The notes under the pieces were generated by a model. The model was not told the origin of the DNA. It was given only the letters and a program-made list of their open reading frames with translations, and did not search any database. A DNA stretch of 29,118 nt from Prasinococcaceae sp. CCMP 1430 (taxonomy: Eukaryota; Plantae; Prasinodermophyta). The DNA lies in contig RQSC01000523.1 in the NCBI GenBank assembly GCA_013416795.1, forward strand, positions 105,712 to 134,829, given 5' to 3'. Shown here in pieces: positions 1,341 to 28,000 of this stretch (positions within the stretch are counted from its first letter, which is position 1; each line of letters begins with the position of its first letter). Made by a program: the position numbers and the translations under genes.

Positions 1341-1412
1341 GGCGTCTCGTTGGGCCAACTGCCATCCCGGCGGGCCGACGCCGAAGCGACGCACCCCTGT
1401 ACAGAACCTCAC

Positions 1413-1417
1413 TGTAA
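1413..1417 (+). terminator. TGTAA green-algal poly(A) signal
   Basis: TGTAA(CA) about 70 nt after the methyltransferase stop. UGUAA is the known chlorophyte near-upstream polyadenylation element. Confidence 0.6.
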
Positions 1418-1587
1418 CAAACCAGTTTTTGAAGCGCCTCCTCCGAGTTCATCGCGCGCACGCGCGCTTCGCGCGATGGCCACGCGCGAGCCGAAGGAGC
1501 GCACGCGCCTGTGCGCGCGGCCAGCCCGGCCAAGCCCGCCCGCCCCCCCCCCCTCCCCCGGGACGTCCCTTTGCTCTCCTAGGTTTG

Positions 1588-1592
1588 TTACA
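1588..1592 (-). terminator. TGTAA poly(A) signal for LSM8
   Basis: + strand TTACA (minus TGTAACA) about 50 nt downstream of the LSM8 stop. Confidence 0.6.
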
Positions 1593-1642
1593 AGCAGCGC
1601 TCAACGACCGCGGGGCGGGCTGCGGGGCGCGCGCCCGGCGCC

Positions 1643-1939
1643 CTAGTGCTGCACCGGCTTGAGTGGTGCGGCCTTGATCTTGTCGAGTTCCAGCTGCGCG
1701 TCCAGGTCCTCGTCGAGCTCGCCGACGATGGCGATGGTGTCACCGCGGATTAGGTACACGCCCAGCACGTGCTGCACGACGCCCTCGGCGCTCGAGTAGA
1801 CGCGCTCGTGCGAGTCGTCGAGGATGAGGTTGGTCGTCTGGTCGAAGCCCTTGAGCACGCCAACGATGTTGCGCCCGTCGTTCGTAATCACGCTGATCAC
1901 GTTGCCGACGAGCGGCTCGAGCGCCGCCGCCGCGCTCAT
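1643..1939 (-). CDS. LSM8: U6 snRNA-associated Sm-like protein LSm8, 98 aa, intronless
   Basis: VISVITNDGRNIVGVLKGFDQTTNLILDDSHERVYSS...LGVYLIRGDTIAIVGELDEDLD...IKAAPLKPVQH: Sm1/Sm2 motifs plus the LSm8-specific ERVYS and C-terminal PLKPV.H. Confidence 0.95.
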   Translation of the reverse strand: MSAAAALEPLVGNVISVITNDGRNIVGVLKGFDQTTNLILDDSHERVYSSAEGVVQHVLGVYLIRGDTIAIVGELDEDLDAQLELDKIKAAPLKPVQH

Positions 1940-1980
1940 CGCTGCCGCCGCCGCGCCGCGCTCCGGCTGTCGCCCCGCGC

Positions 1981-2306
1981 NNNNNNNNNNNNNNNNNNNN
2001 NNNNNNNNNNNNNNNNNNNNNNNNNNNNNNNNNNNNNNNNNNNNNNNNNNNNNNNNNNNNNNNNNNNNNNNNNNNNNNNNNNNNNNNNNNNNNNNNNNNN
2101 NNNNNNNNNNNNNNNNNNNNNNNNNNNNNNNNNNNNNNNNNNNNNNNNNNNNNNNNNNNNNNNNNNNNNNNNNNNNNNNNNNNNNNNNNNNNNNNNNNNN
2201 NNNNNNNNNNNNNNNNNNNNNNNNNNNNNNNNNNNNNNNNNNNNNNNNNNNNNNNNNNNNNNNNNNNNNNNNNNNNNNNNNNNNNNNNNNNNNNNNNNNN
2301 NNNNNN
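1981..2306. other. Assembly gap (326 N)
   Basis: Run of N. Confidence 1.

Positions 2307-2397
<91 letters not shown>
2307..2397 (+). repeat. 91-nt poly-G run abutting the gap, probably a sequencing or gap-filling artefact
   Basis: Pure G homopolymer starting at the first base after the N run. Confidence 0.7.
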
Positions 2398-2398
<1 letters not shown>

Positions 2399-2419
2399 GG
2401 CGGACGCGCGTGCGCAGCG

Positions 2420-5400: not shown

Positions 5401-6541
5401 CGCTTGGTGCGACGACAGCAAGAACCAGTTCAAGATGAAGGTGCGCGTGCTGGTGGAGCGCCTCGTGCGCAAGTGCGGCTACGAGGCCGTGCAGGCGGCC
5501 ATCCCCGAGCACCACGCGCGCCTGCTCGTGCACATCCGCAAGGAGAAGGCCAAGGAGGAGCGCAAGCGCCAGGCGCGCTCGGAAGTGCGCGCTGGCGACG
5601 ATGCGAAGTCGGGGCGCACGACGCGCACCGCGATGACCGCGATGACGGCGCGCACTCTCGCCAGGGACTGGGCGGAGGACGATGTCTTCGGCGACGGCGG
5701 CTCGGACGAGGGCATGGGCGGCGCGAGCGACGAGGACATGGACGGCGGCAGGGGCGGCGGCGGAGGAGGCTACGCGAGATCTATGATGGCGCGCTCGCGC
5801 GCTCTGAGCAGCGTCGCTGCCGGTGCGCGTCGAAAGGTGGTGCTGCCCGACTCGGACTTCGACCTGCTGGGCGGTGGCGCCACGCGCGCGGCGCTTGCGG
5901 GTGCGGCGGCCCTCAAGGAGCGTCGCCTGGCACGGCGGCGCGCGCAAGGCGAGGACGACTTCGGCGTGGACAAGAAGTCTGGCCGCCTCGACTTCAGCGA
6001 GGTGGGCGGTAAGGGGCGCGCGGCGAAGCGCGGCCGCGATGTGGACTACGACGACGACGACGACGAGATGGAGGGGGACGAGGAGGGCGACGAGGGCGAC
6101 GACGACGATGACACGCGCTCCAAGAAGCGCGCACGCGGTGGCAAGGCGCGCAGCGTGTCGGGCATGAGCATGGGCGGGCGCTCGGCGCGCACTGTCGGGG
6201 GTCGCTCGGCGCGCACGGCGGGGGGCAGGTCGGCCGGCGGCCGCAGCGCCAAGTCCAACCGCGCGGGCACCGGCCGCGAGTACGCCTCGGCCAGGGCGGG
6301 CGGTGACAAGCAGCTCGCCGCCGAGAAGCACGAGCCGTACGCCTACTGGACGCTGGATGCCGCGCTGCTCAACAAGAAGCGCGCGGGCAAGAAGGCGCAG
6401 GCAATGCGGCAGATGGCGAGCACGGGACGTCTGGGCGCCAACAAGGAGCAGAGAAACAAGGCCTCGCTCGGCAAGGGCACCCGCGCGCAGCGCAAGGCCA
6501 AGGCCAAGCACAGGGCGATGGAACGGGCAGGCGAGCGCTGA
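2420..6541 (+). CDS. RRP12: RRP12-like ribosome biogenesis HEAT-repeat protein, 1373 aa, apparently intronless
   Basis: N-terminal SPTAYFACLM and DARPKVRKRA; NFLPILFN; SVQKKAYK; VLGVKESNQRTRLAAYELL; SKSREIVKSVLGFCKV; FKMKVRVLVERLVRKCGYEAV...LLVHIRK; disordered D/E- and K/R-rich tail containing EPYAY. Confidence 0.9.
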   Translation: MSAEGWDPLEAAGAPPPQASWSACVERLRNSSVRDHRALVAAFEAAGEIVDAQGLPRSPTAYFACLMQSLDAQGRAGGDAEAAAAAATLLAAVLPATPRAVLRSKCEMALGVLARVEVAHDGAQAVQKAVLGCRQHLFSAAVGADGGWAATGASFGAMLRRCVDARPKVRKRALVAVQGGLRAAQGTPAHQHASEAVARLVGEVLPGAARTDDAAAAVAAAAPDGGVSEAERRAREALQLVSSLRSLVPLLDARAASTVANALAALLTASRDRQPMLHKLVVDAAAMLFADLSSDMGVAPAEGLLGAVLSSPINARKDPDGAAALCRLTATAMRRIGSLDGSAAARLLPRALHAVLPMLAELDHEALAFAATEATADMLRHVSPAACAADPPPQAGAPGAAGPPRTVGERCAVALENMLGVRHKDAWPLVLTALAAFAEAVGADHPQLLVSVLAAAAELHSDSADPLAKANDLDLFDAQLGAALGAALRAMGAAPFLATLPLQMELDLDSPDSRAWLLPLVIEHAKKATGSIGYWVRTLLPAARQLEARADAFHAAGAGHGVEAQAAYAAVAQLWEVLASMCCSPDDIATSFQLVAKDLGAALQTDSAERRSTAARALRRLAFGVSERRKAAREEGDGQVVAREDAAAAAIARFSRNFLPILFNLALAAKPEEREELLATVEAIALVTPADALDGFFKQVLRKLLEATAEASDGNKSAEENSAAATRQGIFVELAMSLSEGLPAEATAMLLRGSRPLLSAPAASVQKKAYKLLARLAERRPEVVAGALDETVAALADGLGACATAARRNRLRCLRHVIALFALKRREAIEAVEAGQGGGEGSDGEDGGDGAGGATDPLRAVAPFVGEIVLGVKESNQRTRLAAYELLVELARHMEEAGGDELLRRFFMMVVGALAGSTQHMVAAAVAALARLLFDFPEALLEAAPELMSTVLLLLRSKSREIVKSVLGFCKVLISRLSPTEMTLLLPEMAEGLFAWCDDSKNQFKMKVRVLVERLVRKCGYEAVQAAIPEHHARLLVHIRKEKAKEERKRQARSEVRAGDDAKSGRTTRTAMTAMTARTLARDWAEDDVFGDGGSDEGMGGASDEDMDGGRGGGGGGYARSMMARSRALSSVAAGARRKVVLPDSDFDLLGGGATRAALAGAAALKERRLARRRAQGEDDFGVDKKSGRLDFSEVGGKGRAAKRGRDVDYDDDDDEMEGDEEGDEGDDDDDTRSKKRARGGKARSVSGMSMGGRSARTVGGRSARTAGGRSAGGRSAKSNRAGTGREYASARAGGDKQLAAEKHEPYAYWTLDAALLNKKRAGKKAQAMRQMASTGRLGANKEQRNKASLGKGTRAQRKAKAKHRAMERAGER

Positions 6542-6676: not shown

Positions 6677-8605
6677 CTAGAACATGCCCGGACCCCGTGT
6701 CGGCGTCGCGGTGGGTAGCGGCGGCGGGAAGCAGCCGAGCGCGCAGCACTGCGTGCCCTGGATGGTGCCCGCGTCGAGGCACTTCACCCCCCCGGTGCCG
6801 TCGCCCTTGAGCGCTGGACGCTCGCCGTCCGGGCACTGCCCCGGCCACGATGACTCGATCCAGTAGTAGTCGTTGGGGTCGCACAACCCGTGGCCCGGCT
6901 CGAGCTCCGAGGCGTAGCCGAACTGCTCTCGGGTGCAGAGCGCCGCGCCCACCGACGCGCACATGGCCGCGGAGTTCACGTAGTTGGTGTTGGTGCACAC
7001 GCCCGGCAGCCAGCCGCCCGCGCGGGAGGTGCACACGCCGTCCGCGTTGTCCAGGGGGTCGGTCCAGTTCTTGGCCGCGTCGAAGATCTTCACCGACTCG
7101 GCGATCTCCTCGCAGCACTGCACGAAGCGCGTGGGCGCCGCCGTGGGCATTGCCGTGGGCGCTGCGGTGGGCGCTGGCGTGGGGCACGTCGCGGACGCGC
7201 AGCACGCGACGGCGCCGAGGAAGGCGTCGCGCGTGCACTCGAAGGTGCCCGAGGCCGGATTGTACGCGATGTGCTCCTTGTCCCCGCAGCGGCCGGTCTG
7301 CAGATTCCACTGCTCGCGCGTCCACAGCATCGCGTTGCTGAAGTCGCAGCCCGTGCCCTCGGTGGCGGGCAGCTCGGCCGCGCTGCACAGGTCGGCGTTG
7401 ACGGTCTGGCACATGGCTTGCGCGGTGTGGAAGGTGGTTGCCTTCACGCACTGGTCGGCGAACCAGCCGCCCTTGGTGGCGCCGCACACGCCGGGCACGC
7501 CGTTTTTGCCAGTCTCGCCCCAGCACTGGCCTCCGAGGACGGGATCGCACTCGCCGAGCCAGCGCTGCAGGTTGGGGCAGCAGCCGATCTCGGGGGGCAT
7601 GCCGGCCTGCATCTCCGTGGTCGGCGCCTTGGTGGGCGAGGCGGTCGGCGCTGTCGTAGGGGCGATCGGCCTGGGGACGATAGGATCGGTGAGCACGATG
7701 AAGGAGTCGAACTGGCCCAGCGCAGAGTTCGGGTCGCCGCCCGCCGCAAGCTGCAGGGCCGACTGGATGATCGCTTGCGTCGCAGGCGTGGTGCCCGGCG
7801 GGGCAAGGACGGTGTACGTGAGCTGGGTAGTTTCAATGCCTTCGTTGAGGAATGTTGAGCAGCTGAGATGCGAAGCGCGAGGTCAAAGTCGCGTGCGTTG
7901 GCGGAGCGACGGACCGGCCAACGAGTGAAAAGCGCGCGTGTGGGGGTGGGGGGAATGCGCGGAGGGCGATGGGGATGCGCGCGGCATGCAATGAGGTCAG
8001 CGCGCAATCTCGAGCACGTGGTCGTCAGGTCTCCGCTTTCGCGGCCTATCGCGCGCTTGGGCACGCATGCGCCCGTCATGAAGCATTCGCGGTCGGTCAC
8101 GAGCCTCCGCGCGCCACCAACGCAGCACCGCCAGTTGTGCATCTGCGAGGGCACACCACCAAACGCCTCCGCCGCCGCGCGCACTTTCACAGCCCCGCAC
8201 TCACCTCACGTCCACGAACGCAATGGGCGTGGGAGAGCCTTGAACGGCGTACACTGTGTTCTCGTAGATACTGAGGATCTGCAGCTCCAGGAGGGGGCAG
8301 CTCGGATTGACCTGCGCAGCGACCACGCTCGCGGGTCCATTCTGCTGCTGCTGCTGACCGGTGAACTCGTCCTTGGAGATGGGGACGATCGGCAGTGGGA
8401 GGGGCACCGCGCCTGGCGGTGCAGTGACATCCAGGGGCGGCCCAACGAGACCAGCGACGCGCGTCACGGACGCGCTGAACGCCACCGACATTGCCGCGGC
8501 CGTCGCTACCACGCTGGCGGCGCCCGCCACCCGCCGCATGGCGCCGCGCTCGGCGGCGCGCCCCCGCGCGCCCATGCCCATGGCGGCGGCGAAGGATTCC
8601 GCCAT
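6677..8605 (-). CDS. Putative secreted/cell-surface protein with two tandem Cys-rich domains and PT(A/T)-rich linkers; 2 exons (8605-8205, 7862-6677), 528 aa
   Basis: AG|GTGAGT donor at 8204 and TCTCAG acceptor at 7863, with a TTGAC branch, join the 8201-8605 ORF in frame to the 6677-7696 ORF. N-terminal hydrophobic stretch; two homologous 12-14-Cys domains separated by PTAAPT repeats. Confidence 0.75.
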
Positions 8606-15955: not shown

Positions 15956-16778
15956 AGCGCAATTGCGTGCGCGCGAGCGAGGGAGAGTCAACCGCGGGCG
16001 CCCGCCCGCGCCCGCGCCAACAACGCCCGCGACCCCTCCCCCCCTTCTTCCCCACGCCGCCCCGCTCGCGCCCGCCTCGCGCAGCGCCGAAGCCAATCGC
16101 GGCCCTGACTGTCGAAATCTCGCTCCCAAACCCTTCGCCGCGCCACCCCGCCCCCACCCCTTCACCCCCCTCGCGCACGCTGTGGCGGGCGGCGGCGGCG
16201 GCGATGGCGCTCGCTCGCTCCCTCGCTCTCGCGCGGTCGTCGCGCGGGGGAACCGACCCCGCAAACCGCCGGTCGAAATGCGCAAAAATGCGCACAACGC
16301 GCGCCCATCCGCAATACGAATCACCATAGGTGCCTCCCAACAACACGAGCAAAAAACGCTCCCCAAATTTGCCAAGGCGTCGTTTGTGTTTGTTGTTTGC
16401 CGAATTCCGATCACTGACGTCGATCGCTGACGCCTAACGGCCGCATAGGAAGGGAGTGGGGCGCGCGGCGAAAACCTCGATACCAGTTTTTTGGGGGTTG
16501 GTTGGAGTTCGAGCCCGCGCGGGTGGTGCGGCGCGCAGGAGACAGCTGCCCGCGAGCTAGGGCTGGTGTGCCACACGCCGCGCGCGGGGAGGCGTGTGGG
16601 GGGGGAGGAGGAGGCGGTCGGGGGGCTTGCGAGGACGCGGTCGCGGTGCCGCCGCGTGGGGGCCGCGCGGGGTGACCCCCCCCACACACACACCACACAC
16701 ACAAGTGCGTGCGGCGCACGTTGTGGCGGCGGCGGCGGCGCGGGGCTCTCTCGCGCCCGGGCCGCAGCGGCGCGCGCG

Positions 16779-18920
16779 ATGGACGGCGGCGGCAGCGCCG
16801 TGCCCTCGGCGTCAGATGCCCGGAACGGCGCGCCCGCCGGCGCGGAAGGGCACGCGCCGGGATCGCATGCGCCGCCACCAACGGAGCTCGGACACATCCC
16901 TGGCGCCCAGCCAGATGACGCGACGCGCTTCGTGTCGTCGCTCAAGGCCTTCCTGCTCGAGACGCAGGGCGTGATTCTCTTCGGCACAGCCGGCTGGGAG
17001 CAGCCCTGCGTCGGCCCAGCGAGGGACGTGCTCAGCCTCACGCAGCTCTACCGGTTCGTCGCGCTGCGCGGCGGCGCTGGCGCGGCCGCACAGGCCACCT
17101 TCGATTGGCGGAGCATTGCGGCGCAACTCAACTTCCCGCCAGAGGCGGCACCGGCCATCAAGCTCACCTACACGCAATTCCTGTCGGCGTACATGAGGCG
17201 CTACCTCGCGCCTCTGCACATGGTAGCCGCGCCGGGCGCCGCCGGCCGTGCGCCCGGTGCCGCAGCTCCGAAGCGTGAGAGGAGCCAGGTCACGGGGAAG
17301 CGATCGTCGGCGACGGCCGGCCTGCCCGCCGTGCGCGTGCCAGACGGCGCTGCCGGGCCGAAAATGGAGAGTGGCGCCGCCGGTAACTCCAACAACGGGA
17401 CGAAGGAGCCGCCGACCGAGCTCGAGCTCGCGAAGATGCGCAAGCTCCTCGGGGATATGACGCCTTCGCTCGACCCATCGATTTACGCGTCGGCGGACGT
17501 CGAAACCGCGCAGGGGGGCATGGGCCTGCTGCAGTCGCTCGTGTGCGGCGTTGCTGCGGAGCGCGCGTGGGCGCTCAACGCACTCATGGCGGCGTCGAGC
17601 GCCAGGGAGGCCGGGCTCGCGCCGGAGCGCATGCCCTTGCTGCTTCGGGGGCTCGTGTCCGTGCTGAAGGCATGGCTTTCGAGGACTCACCCGTCGATGC
17701 CCCTCAAACTGCCGCGATGGCTGGTGGAGGGACTGCCAGAGCACTGCCCTCGACCCAAGCACGTGGACGAGGCTCTCGCAAACATCGCCGGTGCGCCAGA
17801 CGAGATCCTCGGGGAGCTTCGCAATTCGCGGCTGCTCGGCGATCCCTCGTTCTGGCCGGAGGCGTGCCATGCGCTCGCCGATGACCCTGACGGCCTGACG
17901 TCAGCGAGGCACGCCGCCGCCGCGGCCGTCATCCTCTCAAACTGTGCTCTGAGCAAGGAGGGCGCGACGTGCATGGTCAAGGATATCCAGACGCTGTCGC
18001 ATTTAGCCGCCTGCGTCGAGGTTGCGCGCTGGCGGTGCAGTGCGCCCGGCAGCACAGGCAGAGGGGCCGACGGCGGCGGCACCACCACAGGGGTGCCTGT
18101 GCCCGAGGAGGAGGACATATTCAGCGCGTGCGCGACGGCGCTTTGCAGGCTTGGGGGGCTGATTGATCTCGGCAGGCCAGACATGCTGCGCTGTGTGTCT
18201 GAGTCGGCAGACGCCATCAAGGAGGGCGTTGCGATCTCTTCGCGCGTCCTCGATGTGATGGTTCGGCAGTGTCTGGACGCCAGCGCTCCGCCGTCCTTGC
18301 AGGCGCAGGCGCTGCGCGCGCTCGCGCGGACGGCCACGCCCGACATGATCGACAGGGAGGCCGAGCTGGAGGTGGAGGCGGAGCCCCCCATTGATCGACA
18401 CGCGACTGGCGCGGCAGCAGCGTCAAAGGTGGCCGCTGAGGCCAGGCGGGCGGCCGCGCACGCGCTGAATCCTGGCATGGACGAGCCACTGGCGCGCATG
18501 TGCCAGAACAACAGCGAGGTCATGGTGACTCTCGCGCCGAGCTTGGTCAGTCGATCTGTCGAGCTTGCGCGATGGGCGCTCGCACAGCCAGGTGGCAGTG
18601 CTCAGGACGCCGCAGACGTGATCAGCGGCGTCGCGCAACTGCTCCGCGCGCTGTGCGATGTCGGTCCCTCAGGTAGGAAGGCAGTGGCTGGCTGCGCTGC
18701 TGCCGTGCGTTGCCTCGCGCAGCTGCTCGCCTCGCCGTTGTCAAGCGCGTACGCACGCCTCGACGCGGCGCACGCGCTCGATCGCGTGGCGGCATCGGGC
18801 GCCGCTCTCGCGGCGCTGCGGGCTGTGGAAGACGAGCTCGCGCAGGCTGCGGCCTATGCCAGTCCCGCGCTGGCGCACCCGCTGGGGCGCGTGCTGATCG
18901 CCGTAGCACATCCTCACTAA
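16779..18920 (+). CDS. ARID-domain plus ARM/BAF250-like chromatin-remodelling (SWI/SNF) subunit, 713 aa, apparently intronless
   Basis: ARID consensus FVSSLKAFL...LSLTQLYRFVALRGG...DWRSIAAQLNF...IKLTYTQFLSAYM (about 16915-17210). GLLQSLVCGVAAERAWALNALMAAS resembles the start of the BAF250/LFR ARM region. A helical repeat region follows. Confidence 0.75.
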   Translation: MDGGGSAVPSASDARNGAPAGAEGHAPGSHAPPPTELGHIPGAQPDDATRFVSSLKAFLLETQGVILFGTAGWEQPCVGPARDVLSLTQLYRFVALRGGAGAAAQATFDWRSIAAQLNFPPEAAPAIKLTYTQFLSAYMRRYLAPLHMVAAPGAAGRAPGAAAPKRERSQVTGKRSSATAGLPAVRVPDGAAGPKMESGAAGNSNNGTKEPPTELELAKMRKLLGDMTPSLDPSIYASADVETAQGGMGLLQSLVCGVAAERAWALNALMAASSAREAGLAPERMPLLLRGLVSVLKAWLSRTHPSMPLKLPRWLVEGLPEHCPRPKHVDEALANIAGAPDEILGELRNSRLLGDPSFWPEACHALADDPDGLTSARHAAAAAVILSNCALSKEGATCMVKDIQTLSHLAACVEVARWRCSAPGSTGRGADGGGTTTGVPVPEEEDIFSACATALCRLGGLIDLGRPDMLRCVSESADAIKEGVAISSRVLDVMVRQCLDASAPPSLQAQALRALARTATPDMIDREAELEVEAEPPIDRHATGAAAASKVAAEARRAAAHALNPGMDEPLARMCQNNSEVMVTLAPSLVSRSVELARWALAQPGGSAQDAADVISGVAQLLRALCDVGPSGRKAVAGCAAAVRCLAQLLASPLSSAYARLDAAHALDRVAASGAALAALRAVEDELAQAAAYASPALAHPLGRVLIAVAHPH

Positions 18921-18993: not shown

Positions 18994-21765
18994 CTATCGC
19001 TCACCGAGGTCGCCGGTGGCCACGACGGTCGCCGCGTCAGAGAGATGTTTGACGAAGCCACCTTGCTCCTTCACGGCCTTGAGCTGATCACCGACCAGTG
19101 GCTCGCGCTCAAGCTTCAAGCAGACGACGCTTATGTCATCGGGCTTGTGCTGCTCTCGGCGACGCAACGTTGCAACGTAGCTCAGCCGCCGGGCGGCGCG
19201 CGAGCACGACTTGGCTCTGCGCTGTCTCGCCATGACTTCGTGGTCTTCCAGCATATCCCAGAGCCCGTCAGACGCGACAGTCACCAACATGCGAGTCGTT
19301 GCGGGGGCGAGCGTGTTCAGGTCGAAGCGGGATATGTATGGCTTTGCGTTCACCGCGGGGTGTGCCTTCCCGTCGCCCAGCGAGCGGCTAACCGCCAGTC
19401 CCCCAGGCCATGCTCGCAGAGGCCCGACTTCCACACCCGACGAGCGCTCGCGCAGGCGTGACACCTTGGCGCCTCCCAACCGCAACCGCCTCACCTCTGA
19501 GGGACTGTCGTCAAGGCGGTGGTCCACAGTCAGCCTGAACGTGTGCTCGCGCCTTTGAAACAAATTGATGCCCAGCACCCCGCACGACATCGGCATCTCA
19601 ACTCCCCCTTCGGGCAACCCGATGACGCCGCGCGAGTCACCCACGTTGGCAGTGGTGATAATGCCATCGCGGATGACCATAGCAGTGGCAGTGCAGCCCG
19701 CGCGCGTCTGACTCTCCTTGGTCAGCGCATCTATCTCCGCCATTGCCTTCGACAGGGCCTTGGGGAGCGCCTCGCTCATTCCGCGGCGCTTGCGCAGCCG
19801 CGTCGACAGCGCCGACAGCAGTGCCCAGGGAAACCGCTCGCGTGCAAGCTCGGCCGCCTCGAACCCAGCATGGCCGTCGAACACGCATACCAGCGTGGCA
19901 TTGCCCAGTTCACCCGCGCGCCACTGCGAATCGGACATAGCGCCCTCGCCATTCCCCCCTCCGTCGGGTGACGGCAGCACAAGGACGCGGTCTTCTCCCT
20001 TCGCAGTGACCGTGGCCGCCTTCACCTCAACGTTCCAGTCCTTGCGCTCGTCCAGGAAGCGCACCCTCGTCCTGGAGGCACTAGTGCGCCGCTTGCCTTC
20101 GGGGACCACGCCGCACAGGCAGTGTTTCAGCCACTTCCACTGCGCGCGCATGACGACGTAGGCGTGCTCCAACTGGTGGGAGAGCTCATCGGCCATCGTC
20201 AGCGGGGCGCTCAGGAAGTCGTACAGCGGCTCGATCCCATTGAGGAGGTCCATGTCCACATTGGTGTACGACAGTGCTGCATCACCCGGCGTCCTGTCGC
20301 TCGCATCAGAACTTGCGCGGGCGACAGAGCCGTCGGGCACAGACGCATCGGGGCTCTCGCGCTCGGCCGAGGCCCTCGCGCGCTCGCCCTCCTTCGCCTT
20401 GCGCCGCTGCACGACACTTATCGACCGCAGGTTTTGGACGAACTTGAGCAACTCACCGCGATCAAACGGTCCTGAGTTCAGCACCGACTGGTCGACCCCA
20501 GGCAGGAACTCAAACTTGTTGTTGCTATCGGACCTCTCCGAGCTTCCGGAGGAAAATCCGGAGGAAAAGGACCCGCAGATCGAGTTCGAGGGAGAGTCCA
20601 CCATGGTTCGTAATCTTCGCCTCCTCAGAGACGCCTTGAGGGACGGCCACGCGAACAGGCTCGAGGTGCCGAGGAAGCTCATCGCACAGACGGTGACCAC
20701 CACTGCCAGTGCGTGCAAGAGCCGCATGCCCGCACCGCCCATCGCGTCGGCGGCCTCCTGCCCGTAGGTCAGCGAGACGAGGTGAGGCTGCGCGAACACC
20801 CCGCCCAGCAGCATGCCAACGAGGCCGCCAACAAGGTGTGAGGCAATGATGTCGAGTGCGTCGTCGATGCGCAGGTACGCGAGCCCGTACACCGAGGCCA
20901 CAAAACCGAGGCCGGCGACCGCCCCCACCGCCACAGACCCTCCCGAGGAAAGCACGGGGGCGCCGCACGCCACCGCCGCCGTGCCCGCGATGGCACCACG
21001 CACGCACGTCGATGCTGGCAACGCACCGCCATACCCTTTCAGCTTGCTCACGAGCACCGATCCCGCCGCTGCGGCCGCAGACCCGGCCGCCGCCGCAAGC
21101 ACCGTGCACAACAGTGTGCGCCCCAAGAAGTCGGGCATCGCTGCTGCCCACGGCGCCGCGCCGCACGCTGAGAGCGACAGTCCCCACATCGCCATCAAGC
21201 CGCCAATGCCGGAGAGCGCCTCGTCGTGTCCCTCGAAGGCACCGCTGAAGGGCTTGCCCGCCGCGTCACGCGTGCCACCGGTGATGGCGCTGGCCTTGAG
21301 GAGGCTCGCCGCGCCCGCGTTTGCCTTCTCGTCGAAACGTCTGCGTCCCTGCGAGTCCTTGCGCGGCCCGACGAAGACCGCGCACGCCAGCGCCGCGGCG
21401 CCGCTCACGATGTGCAGCGGGCCGCAGCCGGCGATGTCGAGCGCCGCCGAGCGCGCGCCGCTCTCCGGAGCGAAGAGCGCGCCCGGCGCCCACTCGAGCC
21501 GCATCGCGAGCGGGCTGAGCACCCCACCGACGAGCGTGCCGACCATCAGGACGTTCAAGGCCGAGAAGGCGCGCTCGGCCATGCCGGCCACCGCGAAGGT
21601 CGCCGCGAGGCCCGCGAGCGCCGCCACGTGCAGCCGCGCGACGCCGGCCTCGACGCCCATGTTTGCGCCGACGCCCGTCGCGGCCCCGGCGGCTGGATAC
21701 GTTTCGTGGCCGGCCACTCGCCACCCGAAGAGGCCGAACGCCGCGAGCGCCGCGGTCGTCGCCAT
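18994..21765 (-). CDS. Ammonium transporter (Amt/Mep/Rh)-like domain fused to a PP2C/PPM Ser/Thr phosphatase; single ORF, 923 aa from ATG 21765 (997 aa from the alternative ATG 21987)
   Basis: Amt motifs: AGMAER, LDIAGCGPLHIVSGAAAL, GPR, GAIAGTAAV, IDDALDIIASHLVGGLVGMLLGGVFA (about 21765-20640). PP2C motifs: KGEDR, VFDGHAG, GCTA, ANVGDSR, LTVDH, GGLAVSRSLGD, VASDGLWD, DDISVV (about 20030-19090). No stop codon between the two domains. Confidence 0.9.
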   Translation of the reverse strand: MATTAALAAFGLFGWRVAGHETYPAAGAATGVGANMGVEAGVARLHVAALAGLAATFAVAGMAERAFSALNVLMVGTLVGGVLSPLAMRLEWAPGALFAPESGARSAALDIAGCGPLHIVSGAAALACAVFVGPRKDSQGRRRFDEKANAGAASLLKASAITGGTRDAAGKPFSGAFEGHDEALSGIGGLMAMWGLSLSACGAAPWAAAMPDFLGRTLLCTVLAAAAGSAAAAAGSVLVSKLKGYGGALPASTCVRGAIAGTAAVACGAPVLSSGGSVAVGAVAGLGFVASVYGLAYLRIDDALDIIASHLVGGLVGMLLGGVFAQPHLVSLTYGQEAADAMGGAGMRLLHALAVVVTVCAMSFLGTSSLFAWPSLKASLRRRRLRTMVDSPSNSICGSFSSGFSSGSSERSDSNNKFEFLPGVDQSVLNSGPFDRGELLKFVQNLRSISVVQRRKAKEGERARASAERESPDASVPDGSVARASSDASDRTPGDAALSYTNVDMDLLNGIEPLYDFLSAPLTMADELSHQLEHAYVVMRAQWKWLKHCLCGVVPEGKRRTSASRTRVRFLDERKDWNVEVKAATVTAKGEDRVLVLPSPDGGGNGEGAMSDSQWRAGELGNATLVCVFDGHAGFEAAELARERFPWALLSALSTRLRKRRGMSEALPKALSKAMAEIDALTKESQTRAGCTATAMVIRDGIITTANVGDSRGVIGLPEGGVEMPMSCGVLGINLFQRREHTFRLTVDHRLDDSPSEVRRLRLGGAKVSRLRERSSGVEVGPLRAWPGGLAVSRSLGDGKAHPAVNAKPYISRFDLNTLAPATTRMLVTVASDGLWDMLEDHEVMARQRRAKSCSRAARRLSYVATLRRREQHKPDDISVVCLKLEREPLVGDQLKAVKEQGGFVKHLSDAATVVATGDLGER

Positions 21766-21987
21766 GATGAGGCGCACCGCCGCGGCGGCCGCGCCGCCGC
21801 GCTGGTTGGACGCCGCGCCTCCCGCGGCGGCCGACCTCGCGCGGCGGCGGCGGCGGCGGCGGCGAGGAGGAGGAGGAGGAGGCGCGCGCGAGCGGGGGCC
21901 CCGGCCGCGTTCCCCGATCTTTTCCGCCGCGCCCGCGGCGCTCGCCCCCTCGCGCGCCCTCCTTCGCCGCACCACGCACCGCGCCAT

Positions 21988-22692
21988 GCAAATACCCACG
22001 GGAGACCATATTTGACCTAAAAATGCATTGGGGCGCGGGGCGCCGCGCGGGGCGCCATCGCCGGCCGGGAGGGTGCTGCGTTCCTCCCGGCCGGCCCCCG
22101 GCCGGAGCCCTGCGAGGACATTCGGATTCGGATTCGCATGCATTCATTTGGGAGGAACAAAAAAGAGGTGCGCGGGCGCGGGCGGGGTGCGTTTTGCCCT
22201 CGCCGCGTTCCCCGAGCGCGCGCGTTCCCCGAGCGCGCGGATTTTTTTTGGGTTTGGGGGCGGGGCGGCCGCGGCGGCGGCCCACAACTTCAGNNNNNNN
22301 NNNNNNNNNNNNNNNNNNNNNNNNNNNNNNNNNNNNNNNNNNNNNNNNNNNNNNNNNNNNNNNNNNNNNNNNNNNNNNNNNNNNNNNNNNNNNNNNNNNN
22401 NNNNNNNNNNNNNNNNNNNNNNNNNNNNNNNNNNNNNNNNNNNNNNNNNNNNCGGCGCGCGCGCTCGGGGCGCGCTCGCGGCGTTCGGGCGCGGCGACGC
22501 GAGGGCGCGCATCGGCAGCCCCCCCCCCCCCATCCCCCCCCCTCCCTCTTGCAGCCACCGACCTCACCGTCTCGCTCGCGCCGAGCTGCACTCGCGGCCG
22601 CGGCAGCAGGGGGCGGGACGGGCTGGGGCGGAGAGGCGGGAGCAGACGGAGAGGCGCAGCTCGCGCGCGCGGGGCCTGCCATCGCCGTCGCG
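21988..22692. promoter_or_regulatory. Putative bidirectional promoter shared by the Amt-PP2C fusion and AMT1
   Basis: Divergent starts. Contains (ATTCGG)n at 22120-22136, a 17-bp tandem duplication at 22204-22237 and an N-gap. Confidence 0.5.
22294..22452. other. Assembly gap (159 N)
   Basis: Run of N. Confidence 1.
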
Positions 22693-24660
22693 ATGGTCGA
22701 GGGCGACACCGCCGCGCCCACCCTGGAGGAGATGCTGTTGCGGGTCGGCACGGCCGAGCGCGCGGTGGACGCGCTGTGGGTGACCTTTGCGACGGCCATG
22801 GTGCTCTTCATGCAGATGGGCTTCGCCGCGCTCGAAGTTGGCGCGGTGCGCACGAAGAACACGCGCACGATCTTGCTGAAGAACATCCTGGACTTTTCGG
22901 TGGGCACGCTGACGTTCTGGGCCCTCGGGTACGGCGTCGCGTACGGCGGCGGCAACAACCAGGCGGGCGGGAGGTCGGGCTATTTCCTTTCGGACACGCT
23001 CGTGCCCCAGGTCAGCGACGGCGAACCAATCACCGCCGACGACCTCCCCGCGGCGGCAGCCGAGGGCACCTTCGCGCACTTCACGCTGCTGCTGGCGTAC
23101 GCGTGCACGTCCACCACCATCGTGTCGGGCGCGCTCGCCGAGCGCGTGCGCCTGCGCGCCTTCCTCATCTTCACCGGGCTCAGCTGCTGGATCCTGTCGC
23201 CGCTGCCCATGCGCTGGACGTGGTACACGGGCGGCTGGCTCAACGCCAGCGCGTTGAGCACGACGTACACCGAGGGGCGCGCGCTCTTGGACGTGGGCGT
23301 GGTGGACTTCGCCGGCGCGGGCGTGGTCCACGCCGTGGGCGGCTTCTGCGCGCTGGTGGCCGCCAAGATGGCCGGCCCCAGGCTCGACGAGCGCGGCGTG
23401 AAGCGCTTCGAGAAGGGCGTGCGCGAGCACGACTTCGCGCCTCACGGCCCTGCGCTGTCCATCATCGGCGCGCTGTGCCTCCTCTTCTCGTGGTACGGAT
23501 TCAACGCGGGCTCCACCCTGGCCATCGTCGGCCAGGAGGACGTCGTCGCGTCGGTGCTCGTCACCACGACGCTCTCCGGCGCGAGCGCGATGATCGCCGG
23601 CAGCGCGATGCTGCTCGCCTCTTCGGGCTCCGCCAACGCGCTCGACCTGACCAACTGCCTGCTGGCGGGGCTCGTGGGCGTCACCGCCGGCTGCGCGGTG
23701 TTCGAGGCGTGGGCGAGCGTGGTGACGGGAATCCTGAGCAGCGCCGTGTACATCGGCGCCTCCAAGCTGCTCAAGCGCTTCAAAGTCGACGACCCGCTGG
23801 ACGCGAGCGCGCTGCATGGCGCATGCGGCAGCTTCGGCGTGGTCGCCGTGGGGCTCTTCGCCTCTTCGGACCTGATCGAGCAGGTGTACGGCCCGGGCAC
23901 CGGCGAGCACTACGGTCTGCTGCTGGGCGGCGGCTGGCGGCGCTTCGGCGCGCAGACTGTCGGCGTGGTGGTGTACGCCGCGTGGAGCCTCGCCTTCTCG
24001 GTGCTGCTCTTCTACGCCCTGAAGTACTCGGACCGCGCCTTCGAGTTGGGCAAGCGGATGGTCACCGGGAAGCCCTGCGAGGAGTCCGTGCCCAACGAGA
24101 GCGCCGAGGACCGCGAGCGCCGCGTGGGCAACGGCCTGCGCGTGAGCAGGGAGGTCGAGATGAGCGGCATCGACGTGTCGCACCACGCGGGGCTGCCCTA
24201 CCCGCCCTACCTGGCGCCCTTCATCGACAGCGTTAATATCGTGCGCGAGCTGCAGCTGGCGTCGCTCGAGCAGTCGGACCCGGTGCCCGCACCCGCGCAC
24301 GACGGCCCAGGGGGCGCCACCAGCAGCCCGGCCTCGTCCCCGGGCGCGCCCCGTGCGGACGACGGCAGCTTCCACGAGTTCAACCTGCTGCTGCGTCCGC
24401 GCGTCAACGACCTCAAGGACGACACCGTGCACGGGGCCAGCTCCGTCGACGAGATGCTGGGCGATGCGATCGACCCCGCCGAGGTCGCGGGCGGGACGCC
24501 GCACGCGGTCGACGAGGACGGCGTGCGCTTGCAGGGCGTCGCGGGCGGCGGGGACGGGGACGGGGGCGAGGCGGCCGAGGGGGGCGATGAGACGGGCGAG
24601 GACGGGGACGGGACGGGCGAGACTGGGAGGAAGCCCGAGGAAGCCGCAGCAGCATCCTAG
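22693..24660 (+). CDS. AMT1: AMT1-type ammonium transporter, 655 aa, apparently intronless
   Basis: FMQMGFAALEVGAVRTKN...LKNILD; IVSGALAER; VDFAGAGVVH; WYGFNAGST; LLAGLVGVTAGC; VDDPLDASALHGACG; C-terminal LRVSREVEMSGIDVSHHAG; long acidic tail. Confidence 0.95.
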   Translation: MVEGDTAAPTLEEMLLRVGTAERAVDALWVTFATAMVLFMQMGFAALEVGAVRTKNTRTILLKNILDFSVGTLTFWALGYGVAYGGGNNQAGGRSGYFLSDTLVPQVSDGEPITADDLPAAAAEGTFAHFTLLLAYACTSTTIVSGALAERVRLRAFLIFTGLSCWILSPLPMRWTWYTGGWLNASALSTTYTEGRALLDVGVVDFAGAGVVHAVGGFCALVAAKMAGPRLDERGVKRFEKGVREHDFAPHGPALSIIGALCLLFSWYGFNAGSTLAIVGQEDVVASVLVTTTLSGASAMIAGSAMLLASSGSANALDLTNCLLAGLVGVTAGCAVFEAWASVVTGILSSAVYIGASKLLKRFKVDDPLDASALHGACGSFGVVAVGLFASSDLIEQVYGPGTGEHYGLLLGGGWRRFGAQTVGVVVYAAWSLAFSVLLFYALKYSDRAFELGKRMVTGKPCEESVPNESAEDRERRVGNGLRVSREVEMSGIDVSHHAGLPYPPYLAPFIDSVNIVRELQLASLEQSDPVPAPAHDGPGGATSSPASSPGAPRADDGSFHEFNLLLRPRVNDLKDDTVHGASSVDEMLGDAIDPAEVAGGTPHAVDEDGVRLQGVAGGGDGDGGEAAEGGDETGEDGDGTGETGRKPEEAAAAS

Positions 24661-26219
24661 CTGGGGAGAGCGTTCGCAGCGCGAGTAAGCGTGGTCCTTT
24701 GATTACACCCTCTGGCACGCACGCCGGGCCGCGCGGCGCCCGCAGTCGCCGCCACCCACGCGACGGCGGCGGAGGCGCCCCGCGTCACTGGCCTACATCG
24801 GCGAGGACGAGGGAGGCGAGACGGCCGACGCGTCGTTCTTCGCGGTGGTGGCAGCCGGCTGGGACGAGCGCCCCCGCGCGGCTGCCCCTCCGGCAGGTCG
24901 GCGCGCGCGACGCGCGGCACGGCCTCGCACGCGCGCAGCGCCCTGCGCGCCTCGCCGAAGCCCGGCCTCTTCCTGCCCAGCGCGTCGCTCACGTCGGGCG
25001 TGATGCCCGTGGCGTCGATGTCCACGCCCGAGGGCGTGACGTACTTGCCGACGGTGAGCACGACGCCCGACGCGTCGGCGAGCTCGTACACCGACTGGAT
25101 GAGCCCCTTGCCGTACGTGCGGCTCCCCACGAGCGCCGCGCGGCAGTTGTCGTGCAGCGCGCCGGCGACGATCTCGGACGCGCTGGCCGTGCGCCCGTTG
25201 ACGAGCACCATCAGCGGCAGGCTGGTGGCCGGCGCGTCGAACGTCACCACCTGGCGGCCGGCGGTGCCGTCCGCGCGCCCCTCCTGCTTGACGATGGTGG
25301 AGCCCTCCTCCAGGAAGAGGCGCGCCACCTCCACGCCCGCCGACACCAGGCCGCCCGGGTTGTCGCGCAGGTCGAGCACGAAGCCCTCGGCGCCCTGCTC
25401 CTCGAGCGACTGCACGGCCGCGCGCAGGTCGCGCTGCGCGCGGCTGTTGAACTCGCGCAGGCGCAGGTAGCCGACCGTCCGCACCTCGTCGTCGCCGCCG
25501 CCGCCGCCGCCGAGGCCGCCGAGCGACGCGAGCAGCCCGCCGCTGTCGCGCTCCAGCCGCGCCTCCACGGGGCTCGCCGGCCCCTCCGCGGTGCGCGTCA
25601 TGGCGTACTCGCGCTCGCGGGCCGCGCCGGCGCCCTGCGGCGCGCCCTCCTCGCCGCCCTCGGCGGCGGCCTTGCGCACCTTGAGCACGAGCGGCGCGCC
25701 CACGTTGCCCACCATGAGCGTGCTCGCGTCGAAGGGCGACATGCCGCGCACGCTCTGGCCGTCGACCTCCAGCAGCACGTCGCCCTGCTCCACGCCCGCC
25801 CGGGCGGCCTCGCCCTCGAGGATGAGGCCCAGCACGACGAGCTCGCCGGGCGCGTCGCCCTCGCCGATGTTGAGCCCCACGCCGGTGATGTCGTACTTGG
25901 TGAGCGCGGTGAACTGCGCGGGCGTGACGAAGCGCGTGAACTGGTCGTCGAGCTGCGCGAGCATCGCGCGCACGGCCGCGTACGTCTCGCGCCTCGACGT
26001 GTACGGCGCGCCGCGCATGGTCCGCTCCTTGACGCCCGCCCAGAACTCGGGCGTGTACCGCTGCCCGCGGGCGTCGAGGAAGTGCTCGTCCACCACCGAC
26101 CACGCCTCCTCGATGACCGCGTCGCCGTCGAACGGCGGCGCGTCCGCCTCGGCGGCGCCGCCGGGGCCCGCCAGCAGGTCGCCCACGGAGAACGCGACCG
26201 GCGGCAGCGCGGGCCGGCG
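24657..26219 (-). CDS. CTPA: Carboxyl-terminal-processing peptidase (S41A, CtpA/CTPA1-like, PDZ plus peptidase); 5' end lies in the gap; true stop may be 24793
   Basis: VIEEAWSVV; LDDQFTRF; KYDITGVGLNIG; GYLRLREFN; VLDLRDNPGGLV; VLVNGRTASASEIVAGALHDNCRA; RTYGKGLIQSVYEL. The catalytic Ser/Lys dyad is intact. Confidence 0.9.
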   Translation of the reverse strand, partial: RRPALPPVAFSVGDLLAGPGGAAEADAPPFDGDAVIEEAWSVVDEHFLDARGQRYTPEFWAGVKERTMRGAPYTSRRETYAAVRAMLAQLDDQFTRFVTPAQFTALTKYDITGVGLNIGEGDAPGELVVLGLILEGEAARAGVEQGDVLLEVDGQSVRGMSPFDASTLMVGNVGAPLVLKVRKAAAEGGEEGAPQGAGAAREREYAMTRTAEGPASPVEARLERDSGGLLASLGGLGGGGGGDDEVRTVGYLRLREFNSRAQRDLRAAVQSLEEQGAEGFVLDLRDNPGGLVSAGVEVARLFLEEGSTIVKQEGRADGTAGRQVVTFDAPATSLPLMVLVNGRTASASEIVAGALHDNCRAALVGSRTYGKGLIQSVYELADASGVVLTVGKYVTPSGVDIDATGITPDVSDALGRKRPGFGEARRALRACEAVPRVARADLPEGQPRGGARPSRLPPPRRTTRRPSRLPRPRRCRPVTRGASAAVAWVAATAGAARPGVRARGCNQRTTLTRAANALPS

Positions 26220-27007
26220 NNNNNNNNNNNNNNNNNNNNNNNNNNNNNNNNNNNNNNNNNNNNNNNNNNNNNNNNNNNNNNNNNNNNNNNNNNNNNNNNN
26301 NNNNNNNNNNNNNNNNNNNNNNNNNNNNNNNNNNNNNNNNNNNNNNNNNNNNNNNNNNNNNNNNNNNNNNNNNNNNNNNNNNNNNNNNNNNNNNNNNNNN
26401 NNNNNNNNNNNNNNNNNNNNNNNNNNNNNNNNNNNNNNNNNNNNNNNNNNNNNNNNNNNNNNNNNNNNNNNNNNNNNNNNNNNNNNNNNNNNNNNNNNNN
26501 NNNNNNNNNNNNNNNNNNNNNNNNNNNNNNNNNNNNNNNNNNNNNNNNNNNNNNNNNNNNNNNNNNNNNNNNNNNNNNNNNNNNNNNNNNNNNNNNNNNN
26601 NNNNNNNNNNNNNNNNNNNNNNNNNNNNNNNNNNNNNNNNNNNNNNNNNNNNNNNNNNNNNNNNNNNNNNNNNNNNNNNNNNNNNNNNNNNNNNNNNNNN
26701 NNNNNNNNNNNNNNNNNNNNNNNNNNNNNNNNNNNNNNNNNNNNNNNNNNNNNNNNNNNNNNNNNNNNNNNNNNNNNNNNNNNNNNNNNNNNNNNNNNNN
26801 NNNNNNNNNNNNNNNNNNNNNNNNNNNNNNNNNNNNNNNNNNNNNNNNNNNNNNNNNNNNNNNNNNNNNNNNNNNNNNNNNNNNNNNNNNNNNNNNNNNN
26901 NNNNNNNNNNNNNNNNNNNNNNNNNNNNNNNNNNNNNNNNNNNNNNNNNNNNNNNNNNNNNNNNNNNNNNNNNNNNNNNNNNNNNNNNNNNNNNNNNNNN
27001 NNNNNNN
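26220..27007. other. Assembly gap (788 N)
   Basis: Run of N; hides the 5' ends of CtpA and probably of the ankyrin gene. Confidence 1.
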
Positions 27008-28000
27008 GCGGGCGGCGCGGGCGGCGGCGTGAGCGGGCAGGGCGCGCCGTCGGCTGGAAGCGCGTGCCAGGCGCTGTTGCTGGCAGTTCAGGCGTGTGGC
27101 GTGAACGAAGCCGCCGTGTGCGAGGCGTCGGAGGAGTGCCTCGGGATGGACGAGGAAATCGAGTGGGCAATTGCTGTGTGCTCATTTGAAGAAGAGGATG
27201 ATGACCCAGTAGTAGATGAGGATACGTTACGCGCGGTGGGGGAGCAGGCGCGCTTCTACCGCGCCAGGGCCACAAAGTGGGCCACAGGCGGCAGCGGCAG
27301 CGGCAGCCGTGGCATGGACGTCAGCGGCGACGTGGACGGCCCTGATGCTGCGTGGGCGGAGCGCGCGCGCCAGGCGTTGCTGCTGGTTACGCAGTTTGCG
27401 GGGGTCAGCGCGGTCGCCGTGCGGAAGGTGCGCGCGATGCGCGACGCGAAGAAGAAGGATCTCGTCCGGGTTCTTGATGAGGTGGCCGAGGAATGGGACA
27501 AATGGCATCCTGAGTCTGGCTTAGACTGGTTGCTCGAACGTGCAGCACACTACGGCATTGCATCTGCGCTCCGCCACGCGCTTTTTCGCGGCGCGAATGT
27601 GCATCAAGCGACGTATTGTCGTTCCGCCGACTGCCTGCGGCTGGTGCTCGAGGCTGGCGGCGACGCGGACAACGTGGACGTCGACGGCAATACGCACTTG
27701 CATCGCATCTTCAGGGAATATACATTCTTGCATTTCCCCCGGTCGGACTGCGCCGACTGCGTGCGGCTGCTGCTCGAGGCGGGCGCCGACAAGAACAAGG
27801 CGAACGCCCGCGGCGAGACACCCTTGCACATCGCGGCGCAGAGACACATTCCCGACTGCCTACGGCTGCTGCTCGAGGCCGGCGCCGACGCATCCGCTCG
27901 CAACAAAGTCGGCCGCACGCCGCTCGATTACGCCGAACGGTGGAACTGCAAGGACGCCGCGGCGGTGCTGCGCCAGCACGCCGCCCCCGGCTCGCCGTAA
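27008..28000 (+). CDS. Ankyrin-repeat protein; frame open from the gap edge
   Basis: Three DC.RL(L/V)LEAG(A/G)D units; GNTHLH, GETPLHIAA, GRTPLDYA. TGTAA at 28045. Confidence 0.8.
   Translation, partial: AGGAGGGVSGQGAPSAGSACQALLLAVQACGVNEAAVCEASEECLGMDEEIEWAIAVCSFEEEDDDPVVDEDTLRAVGEQARFYRARATKWATGGSGSGSRGMDVSGDVDGPDAAWAERARQALLLVTQFAGVSAVAVRKVRAMRDAKKKDLVRVLDEVAEEWDKWHPESGLDWLLERAAHYGIASALRHALFRGANVHQATYCRSADCLRLVLEAGGDADNVDVDGNTHLHRIFREYTFLHFPRSDCADCVRLLLEAGADKNKANARGETPLHIAAQRHIPDCLRLLLEAGADASARNKVGRTPLDYAERWNCKDAAAVLRQHAAPGSP

Follow-up and report, generated by a model that had tools for sequence, protein, structure and literature searches.

A degenerate Amt-like/PP2C fusion gene head to head with an AMT1-type ammonium transporter gene in a prasinodermophyte alga

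Fusions of an N-terminal AMT with a C-terminal PP2C, termed AMPC (AMT-PP2C.D), have been described in charophytes and bryophytes together with bacterial AMT-SpoIIE proteins, which are phylogenetically distinct from the plant fusions, and the authors proposed that the AMT is autoregulated by its fused PP2C (PNAS 2024, PMC11665922). In Arabidopsis, phosphorylation of a threonine in the C-terminal tail shuts off the entire AMT1 trimer; the tail phospho-peptide of AMT1;1 is GMDMT(p)RHGG, with the phosphate at T460, and the PP2C ABI1, implicated in AMT1 switching in 2022, binds AMT1;1 and AMT1;2 and reduces phosphorylation of this conserved threonine (PMC9516733). How AMT1 is reactivated after phospho-inhibition in eukaryotic phototrophs is only partly understood. 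Here, we describe a 29,118-nucleotide stretch of the genome of Prasinococcaceae sp. CCMP 1430 (Prasinodermophyta; contig RQSC01000523.1, positions 105,712 to 134,829), referred to in its entirety as the window, in which a gene for a degenerate Amt-like domain fused to a PP2C lies head to head with a gene for an AMT1-type ammonium transporter. Tentatively, and with slightly less than even confidence, we interpret the pair as a conserved divergent two-gene unit consisting of AMT1 and a transporter-derived, membrane-tethered PP2C that would be dedicated to it. AMT-PP2C fusions and sensor Amts are already known; what is new is a decayed Amt domain paired and co-duplicated with a canonical AMT1 in a non-streptophyte. 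Nothing specific on an Amt-PP2C pair in Prasinoderma was found in the literature.

The fused gene, its neighbor, and a second pair

The window has a G+C content of ~70%, and within positions 18994-24660, two long open reading frames (ORFs) diverge from one spacer (Table 1). The minus-strand ORF encodes, without interruption and in the order Amt-linker-PP2C, an Amt-like domain (PF00909, 92.4 bits in two stretches; cutoff, 23.2) and a PP2C domain (PF00481), and the plus-strand ORF encodes an Amt. This bears out the head-to-head fusion/AMT1 pair proposed in an initial annotation made from the DNA letters and their ORFs. The fusion ORF is likewise uninterrupted in many independent metagenome contigs. 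In cluster look-ups, the window fusion was assigned to PRCOL_00004094 and the transporter to PRCOL_00004095, both of Prasinoderma coloniale. In agreement with this, a tblastn search of the window with P0335 and P0001 matched positions 21834-18997 at 99.6-99.9% identity, and the window AMT1, whose start ATG at 22693 is conserved with its orthologues, was 100% identical to P0324 from 22552 on.

When 5.8 billion and 1.84 billion proteins were searched, the only strong relatives of the window fusion were P0002 (48% identity) and P0003 (35%), both of which combine an Amt with a PP2C. P0003 shares a cluster with PRCOL_00000477 and lies head to head with a 601-residue Amt, belonging to the cluster of PRCOL_00000478, on TARA scaffolds L001 and L018. 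There are thus two paralogous fusion/AMT pairs in P. coloniale, each with consecutive gene numbers in the reference (477/478 and 4094/4095). The second pair is present on several independent scaffolds, and its members are 35-40% (fusion) and 53-55% (Amt) identical to those of the window pair. Furthermore, the fusion tree, ((window, P0002), P0003), is congruent with the neighbor tree, ((window, P0005), L001 Amt), with supports of 94-100, which shows that the pair duplicated and diverged as a unit. The head-to-head pairing is old and is conserved in two paralogous loci.

By its sequence, P0002 is the orthologue of the window fusion in a related species. A gene with an ARID domain holds the same position beside both fusions (42% identity), and the two loci are orthologous on that account. 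Synteny in relatives, which the initial annotation had named as a check, was found on the fusion side of the pair, but the AMT1-side flank is not syntenic, since a gene for a channel with Ion_trans and cNMP-binding domains follows the Amt in the related species. P0005, which is 62% identical to the window AMT1, is presumably the partner of P0002. We noted two probable gene-model errors among these relatives: the 1,288-residue model of 477 (P0289, PRCOL_00000477-RA) lacks the N-terminus and reads into a downstream DUF2064 gene, and P0005 holds an unspliced intron inside helix 1.

Across the three Prasinoderma fusions, the Amt-like domain scored 49-92 bits against PF00909. Out of 79 family-conserved columns, the window fused domain keeps 35 and the Prasinoderma fusions as a group 34-35, compared with 69-71 in the unfused neighbors (71 in the window AMT1) and 48-52 in two further Amt+PP2C proteins from marine eukaryote transcriptomes (MMETSP-derived), P0157 (1,092 residues) and P0359 (1,122 residues). 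A model of the fused domain produced with AlphaFold2 (mean predicted local distance difference test score, 84.5; predicted template modeling score, 0.88), for which the input alignment was dominated by canonical Amts, contained 11 long helices. Its best Foldseek matches were the sensor proteins Ks-Amt5 (6eu6) and Sd-Amt1 (8qpf), followed by AmtB and Mep2, with template modeling scores of 0.69-0.80 to 6eu6, 8qpf, and AmtB. The Amt topology of this 11-helix model would place the PP2C in the cytosol.

The pore of the fused domain is only partly preserved. The equivalents of W148, D160, H168, and H318 are retained in every fusion, and H185, H377, and D177 (P0001 numbering) were invariant in 52 of 52 aligned Amts, fusions included. 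In contrast, F103, F107, F215, N216, and S219 are lost in all fusions: the F103 position is now an invariant His, F107 is changed to Leu, F215 to Ser, and both N216 and S219 to Ala, leaving only the W148 equivalent of the S1 recruitment site. The loss of the Phe gate (F107 and F215) and of S219 argues against canonical transport. The alignment also shows that the regulatory tail is gone from the Prasinoderma fusions. Mean column identity among the three fusion proteins is nevertheless 64% over the fused domain, with invariant pore residues; as far as sequence comparison can tell, the domain is under constraint rather than decaying freely. The PP2C appears intact, as judged by its metal-binding motifs KGED, DGH(A/G)G, GDSR, DGLWD, and DDI(S/T), which are conserved in the three fusions, and the nearest solved structures are plant PP2Cs (clade A, PPH1), which match weakly at 41-44 bits. 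The window AMT1 has the twin-His, F215, N216, and S219 in its pore, with F103 changed to Leu and F107 to Tyr, and its tail sequence GIDVS(496)HHAG aligns with the Arabidopsis phospho-peptide.

These features bear on two other explanations of the fused gene. In the first, the protein is an autonomous ammonium receptor-phosphatase, whose homotrimers would bind but not transport ammonium and would switch the fused PP2C, which would act on downstream signaling proteins and not on AMT1. Its layout, with a transducer C-terminal to the Amt module, is that of Ks-Amt5, where the transducer is a histidine kinase, and of Sd-Amt1, where it is a diguanylate cyclase; these very sensors are the best Foldseek matches. 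The twin-His, D160, and W148 equivalents are invariant, and Ks-Amt5 binds ammonium without translocating it (PMC5764959). Other fusions of Amt with signaling domains are known, with guanylate cyclase in a ciliate and with MCP or SpoIIE in bacteria. However, the N1/N2 receptor signature of TM1/TM2 (QX6EX15NX2D[F/T]X54-60TX2[S/T]; PMC11152129), searched for as a regular expression, was absent from all fused proteins (P0001-P0003, P0157, and P0359), while unfused neighbors hold it in full (P0006; likewise the unfused P0131) or in its first half (the window AMT1). Moreover, Ks-Amt5 keeps S219, N216, and the Phe-gate residues that the fusion has lost, and a receptor acting on its own would leave the head-to-head retention and the duplication as a unit unexplained. 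We regard a receptor of this kind as unlikely.

In the second explanation, the decayed domain is a mere polytopic anchor, the PP2C regulates another membrane protein, such as an H+-ATPase, and AMT1 is simply co-regulated. This would fit with the loss of ~56% of the family-conserved columns and with the published AMPC, which carries a PP2C of clade D with the H+-ATPase as its characterized partner (PMC11665922). If the PP2C of the fusion is a plant clade D enzyme, its usual target would be the plasma-membrane H+-ATPase and not an AMT, a point that also speaks against a phosphatase dedicated to AMT1. Even so, fusions that are only 40% identical all have the His, Asp, and Trp that line the pore, which would be needless in an anchor. 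The pair has also been conserved and duplicated together, which points to the AMT, and we consider the anchor explanation improbable.

Table 1. Features of the fusion/AMT1 locus and its flanks (window positions)
Feature	Position	Strand	Description and basis
ARID/BRIGHT-domain gene	16491-18920	+	convergent with fusion
Amt-like/PP2C fusion gene, window portion	18994..21833	-	residues 45-990 of PRCOL_00004094 + stop; intronless
PP2C catalytic domain	19129..20004	-	PF00481, 100 bits; KGED, DGHAG, GDSR, DGLWD, DDIS, VGPLRAWPGGL
Degenerate Amt-like membrane domain	20599..21833	-	helices 2-11 in window; helix 1 absent from assembly
IASHLVGG	20824-20847	-	second twin-His, kept; alignment
WGLSLSAC	21163..21186	-	replaces WYGFNAGS; inner Phe-gate residue, Asn, and S219 equivalent gone; alignment
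GPRKDSQGRRRF	21334..21369	-	5-residue insertion, fusion copy; alignment, motif search
LDIAGCGPLHIVSG	21400..21441	-	D160 and first twin-His equivalents, kept; alignment
SPLAMRLEW	21490..21516	-	AmtB W148-equivalent Trp kept, MR replacing family VH; alignment, motif search
Junction lacking ~343 bp	21834..21839	.	missing from window: true start codon of fusion, residues 1-44, and 210 bp farther upstream
Common divergent spacer	21840..22692	.	putative bidirectional promoter; includes assembly gap 22294-22452
AMT1-type ammonium transporter gene	22693..24660	+	655 residues; PRCOL_00004095; ATG at 22693; PF00909, 280 bits; pore motifs intact
SPLPMRWTW	23197..23223	+	MR variant, transporter; alignment, motif search
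GPRLDERGVKRF	23374..23409	+	matching 5-residue insertion, transporter copy; alignment, motif search
C-terminal regulatory region	24166..24222	+	GIDVSHHAG, then subclade motif YPPYLAPF; Ser496 at Arabidopsis AMT1;1 T460 position; alignment
PDZ + Peptidase_S41 gene	24657-27275	-	C-terminal processing protease; convergent with AMT1; 788-N gap 26220-27007 inside

Origin of the fused domain

The initial annotation held that AMT1 had been duplicated in place and that one copy had degenerated and captured a PP2C, citing four pairs of words shared between the two genes. All four were found where they had been reported, but only the 5-residue insertion and the MR variant are idiosyncratic; FEGHDEALS.../FAPHGPALS... 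and LVSLTYG/LIEQVYG fit the general Amt consensus and are ordinary motifs of the family. At the insertion, the family sequence GPRxG-RF is replaced by GPRxD(E/S)xGxxRF in the three fusions, their three neighbors, the unfused P0131 and P0171, and the fusions P0157 and P0359. Among 360 proteins compared, the insertion (GPRxDxxGxx[RK][FY]) was confined to the fusions, their neighbors, and four to five relatives, and it marks the subclade. Similarly, the family sequence PVVVHWVW has become xMHWxW in P0131, P0171, and P0157, and in the same set of proteins, xMRxxW was restricted to the Prasinoderma fusions and their neighbors.

Direct comparison of the window fusion protein with the window AMT1 gave 29% identity over 317 residues (E value, 4e-20). 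Trees were calculated under LG+C20+F+G4 with posterior mean site frequencies (PMSF). Careful searches returned the topology (fusion, (neighbors, (P0171, ((P0131, P0157), rest)))) with supports of 74/80, 76/91, and 78/99, and one other search was weaker; the sister grouping of fusion and neighbor is the node with 74/80 (ultrafast bootstrap/Shimodaira-Hasegawa-like approximate likelihood ratio test [UFBoot/SH-aLRT]). In a placement test, the fusion clade was regrafted on all 104-106 branches of a fixed backbone, with a second run using a different alignment and adding P0359. A position of the fusion clade as sister to the neighbor clade received a likelihood weight of 0.79 (0.67 in the second run), and positions anywhere within the insertion subclade together received 0.98 (0.96), compared with 0.012 beside P0157 in the first run and 0.015 beside the P0157+P0359 stem in the second. 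The assignment of the fused Amt-like domain to the same narrow AMT1 subclade as its neighbor is solid at the level of sequence, and a sister relationship to the neighbor, born by duplication of the latter, is favored but not proven.

Several results weigh against such a duplication. When Amts were scored with a profile of the fused domain, the neighbors reached 54-68 bits and ranks of ~46-181 of 270, and other Amts reached up to 90.6 bits. The window neighbor, at 67-68 bits, is thus not the most similar Amt; with a rank of only ~50, raw similarity was dropped as proof of sisterhood. In quick trees, the fusions, on a very long branch of 3.5-3.9 substitutions per site, fell at the base. The approximately unbiased (AU) test rejected no placement of the fusion clade, so that the sisterhood is not significant, and a tree constrained to unite the fusion with P0157 had a log likelihood (lnL) 1.6 units (+1.63) above that of the free tree and is equally likely. 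The sister phylogeny that had been predicted is hence the preferred one in the placement weights and the supports but is unconfirmed by these two tests. The MR change could, judging from the composition of the sequence, be a convergence in a genome of 70% GC. At the DNA level, the only inverted repeats between the two genes were two chance-level arms of 26-28 nucleotides (nt) at 71-73%, which implies that any duplication is ancient.

The phosphatase half of the protein also weighs on this side. In a phmmer search with the fused PP2C, P0157 and P0359 scored 108 and 94 bits, whereas PP2C-only proteins scored 52-57 and the best match in the PDB reached 44. The motif VGPLRAWPGGL is common to the PP2Cs of Prasinoderma and of P0157/P0359, and in a seven-taxon tree with only two outgroups, the fused PP2Cs of both lineages joined at 90/87. 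This grouping hints at an older single fusion and not at a capture after local duplication. The Amt domains of P0157 and P0359 are better preserved (189 and 169 bits), contain the insertion as GPRLDExGxPRF, and keep the tail motif region; being less decayed, they suggest an order of events in which the fusion preceded the decay. Local duplication remains only the favored explanation because better-preserved Amt-PP2C fusions occur in other eukaryotes.

It is somewhat unlikely, in our estimation, that the gene is a decayed descendant of one old AMT-PP2C fusion, which would have arisen in a more remote ancestor common to P0157/P0359 and perhaps also to the streptophyte AMPC. The likeness to the neighbor would then go no further than the subclade, and the adjacency to AMT1 would be secondary or kept for co-regulation. 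P0157 and P0359 share the insertion-bearing Amt subclade and the closest available PP2C, the clade uniting the fusion with P0157 went unrejected, and the losses at conserved columns coincide in all five fused proteins (Asn and Asp of N1/N2, F107, the first Trp of HWxW, N216, and S219); AMPC has, in addition, been published for charophytes and bryophytes. On the other hand, the placement weights are far higher beside the neighbors than beside P0157/P0359, MR is common to the fusions and their neighbors only, with MH in P0157, and the PP2C tree has two outgroups only. Long-branch attraction, moreover, would favor uniting both fused lineages. The fused-PP2C grouping and the placement of the Amt domain are mildly in conflict, and the sequences are compatible with a single old fusion followed by decay or with an AMT subclade that fused repeatedly with its cognate PP2C.

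Other Amt fusions were encountered in the course of the searches. The transcript contig of P0157 (L024) has at its 3' end CCCTAAACCCTAA, which is complementary to the telomere repeat TTTAGGG; the contig end could be chimeric, or the gene could be subtelomeric. P0129 and P0181 (1,672-1,825 residues) consist of a tandem Amt-Amt and an adenylate/guanylate cyclase domain, and one of them is from the ciliate Artemidia motanka. Six seemingly prokaryotic proteins (P0347-P0349, P0351, P0353, and P0354) combine an intact Amt (335-354 bits) with P-II (GlnB/K), MCP, or SpoIIE.

Assembly of the common spacer

The sequence between the two genes is incomplete in the window. At the junction of the fusion ORF with the spacer, the ~343 bp that are missing correspond to positions 114-456 of TARA scaffold L006 (99.6% identical); in a blastn comparison, positions 1-113 of this scaffold matched window 21953-21840 and positions 457-5559 matched window 21833-16734. 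The collapse or deletion sits at a GCC/GGA repeat. The PRCOL_00004094 reference protein also implies the missing piece, and its first 44 residues were found in no frame of the window. Because the real ATG and these residues fall in the missing 343 bp, the N-terminus of the 1,049-residue window ORF (MHANPN...RRRRRR) is spurious. A loss of TM1 from the fused domain, considered at one point, was rejected as an artifact of this assembly collapse, helix 1 being encoded in the missing piece. It also follows that the true ATG-to-ATG spacer measures ~1.06 kb plus a gap of unknown length, and the 0.7-0.9 kb given in the initial annotation is too short. On the AMT1 side, the first exon of the 4095 reference model (MALVRFVRA) was likewise found in no frame of the window, and the 711-residue model (P0324, PRCOL_00004095-RA) adds a non-conserved 5' extension, probably a gene-model error.

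The gap itself, a run of N at 22294-22452, is intergenic: it lies outside both coding sequences, between the two 5' ends, and the AMT1 ATG follows at a distance of 241 bp. ORFs running across the gap were discarded as artifacts in which N had been translated as X. All metagenome assemblies break inside the fusion/Amt spacer, on both sides and in all three lineages, and the spacer, with its extreme GC content and its homopolymer and CT/GC repeats, seems to present a systematic obstacle to assembly. Between the window spacer and its paralogous counterpart, the only motifs in common were GC-rich low-complexity k-mers. In the paralogous spacer, a gap of 100 N on L018 (6686-6785) has the identical 55 nt on both flanks; the gap is therefore a contig overlap, and the spacer is continuous there. 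The corresponding gap on L001 is at 6732-6831, and the L001 spacer lacks ~320 bp of AT-richer sequence that is present in L018.

A false scaffold join over the window gap, which the initial annotation had itself named as a refutation, would make the adjacency an assembly artifact. No independent contig crosses the gap. Of those found via the exact proteins (L006, L008, and L009), L008 and L009 extend only 10 bp into it from the right, and the start of L006 corresponds to window 21953. Another assembly defect of the window is only 450 bp away. In the related species, likewise, no contig holds both P0002 and P0005: the 12 fusion contigs and the 6 Amt contigs break off 45-460 bp upstream of their genes, with ends that do not overlap. 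Both of these observations detract from a conserved two-gene unit. However, the paralogous pair is head to head as well, on TARA scaffolds L001 and L018 at least, with the L018 gap accounted for as above, and the contigs of the two window genes terminate toward one another. Models 4094 and 4095 are also consecutive in the reference, although this is not independent evidence should the window stem from that assembly. We consider a false join very improbable.

Possible mechanism and comparison with known systems

If AMT1 and the tethered PP2C do form a dedicated two-gene unit, both genes would be driven from the common spacer. The Amt-like domain would put the PP2C at the membrane beside AMT1, either in mixed trimers or through co-localization. 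There, the tethered PP2C would strip the inhibitory phosphate from the AMT1 tail (Ser496 site) and so reset uptake, and the pore core that has been kept may make the action of the PP2C dependent on ammonium. A more specific possibility, which we consider quite unlikely, is that the decayed Amt subunit enters mixed trimers, where it would bring the PP2C to the phospho-switch or, being tail-less, would poison trans-activation, the module having been duplicated and having co-evolved. If true, such a mixed-trimer module would be a eukaryotic counterpart of amtB-glnK made from a paralogue of the transporter itself.

The locus takes the AMT-PP2C (AMPC) architecture outside the streptophytes and contributes a variant with a pseudo-transporter. 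It offers a compact, genetically linked system to study transporter-phosphatase coupling in a deep-branching green alga, although its practical value is limited pending expression and interaction data.

With AMPC, the window fusion shares an N-terminal AMT and a C-terminal PP2C in one green-lineage protein, and in AMPC, too, the phosphatase has been proposed to regulate AMT phosphorylation. The window fusion differs in being from the Prasinodermophyta, which lie outside the Streptophyta and were not sampled in PMC11665922. Its Amt domain, with 35/79 conserved columns, is heavily decayed. Furthermore, it stands head to head with an AMT1 of the same subclade in a pair that has been duplicated, whereas PMC11665922 mentions no paired transporter. 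P0157 and P0359 resemble the window fusion in Amt subclade, domain order, lost ammonium-site residues, and PP2C, theirs being the most similar available; they differ in their better Amt domains, in the tail motif region that they keep, and in having MH and not MR, and they are known as transcripts only.

Ks-Amt5 (Amt-histidine kinase; 6eu6, PMC5764959) and Sd-Amt1 (Amt-HAMP-GGDEF; 8qpf, PMC11152129) similarly couple an Amt input to a C-terminal cytosolic signaling enzyme. In contrast to the Prasinoderma fusion, which lacks the Phe gate, S219, and N1/N2, these sensors retain all canonical Amt motifs together with N1/N2; the Prasinoderma protein is, in addition, eukaryotic, has a PP2C as its output, and has a putatively dedicated transporter next door. 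A transporter and a regulator are also linked or fused in bacterial AMT-SpoIIE (P0354), amtB-glnK operons, and Amt-PII fusions (P0347-P0349), but these are prokaryotic and employ another phosphatase or regulator family, and their Amt domain is intact (335-354 bits). Finally, the plant AMT1/CIPK23/ABI1 switch (PMC9516733) is comparable in that the window AMT1 has the conserved tail motif, with Ser at the T460 position. In the plant system, however, the phosphatase is a soluble clade A PP2C encoded elsewhere, whereas in the window, the PP2C is tethered to an Amt-like domain and encoded beside the transporter.

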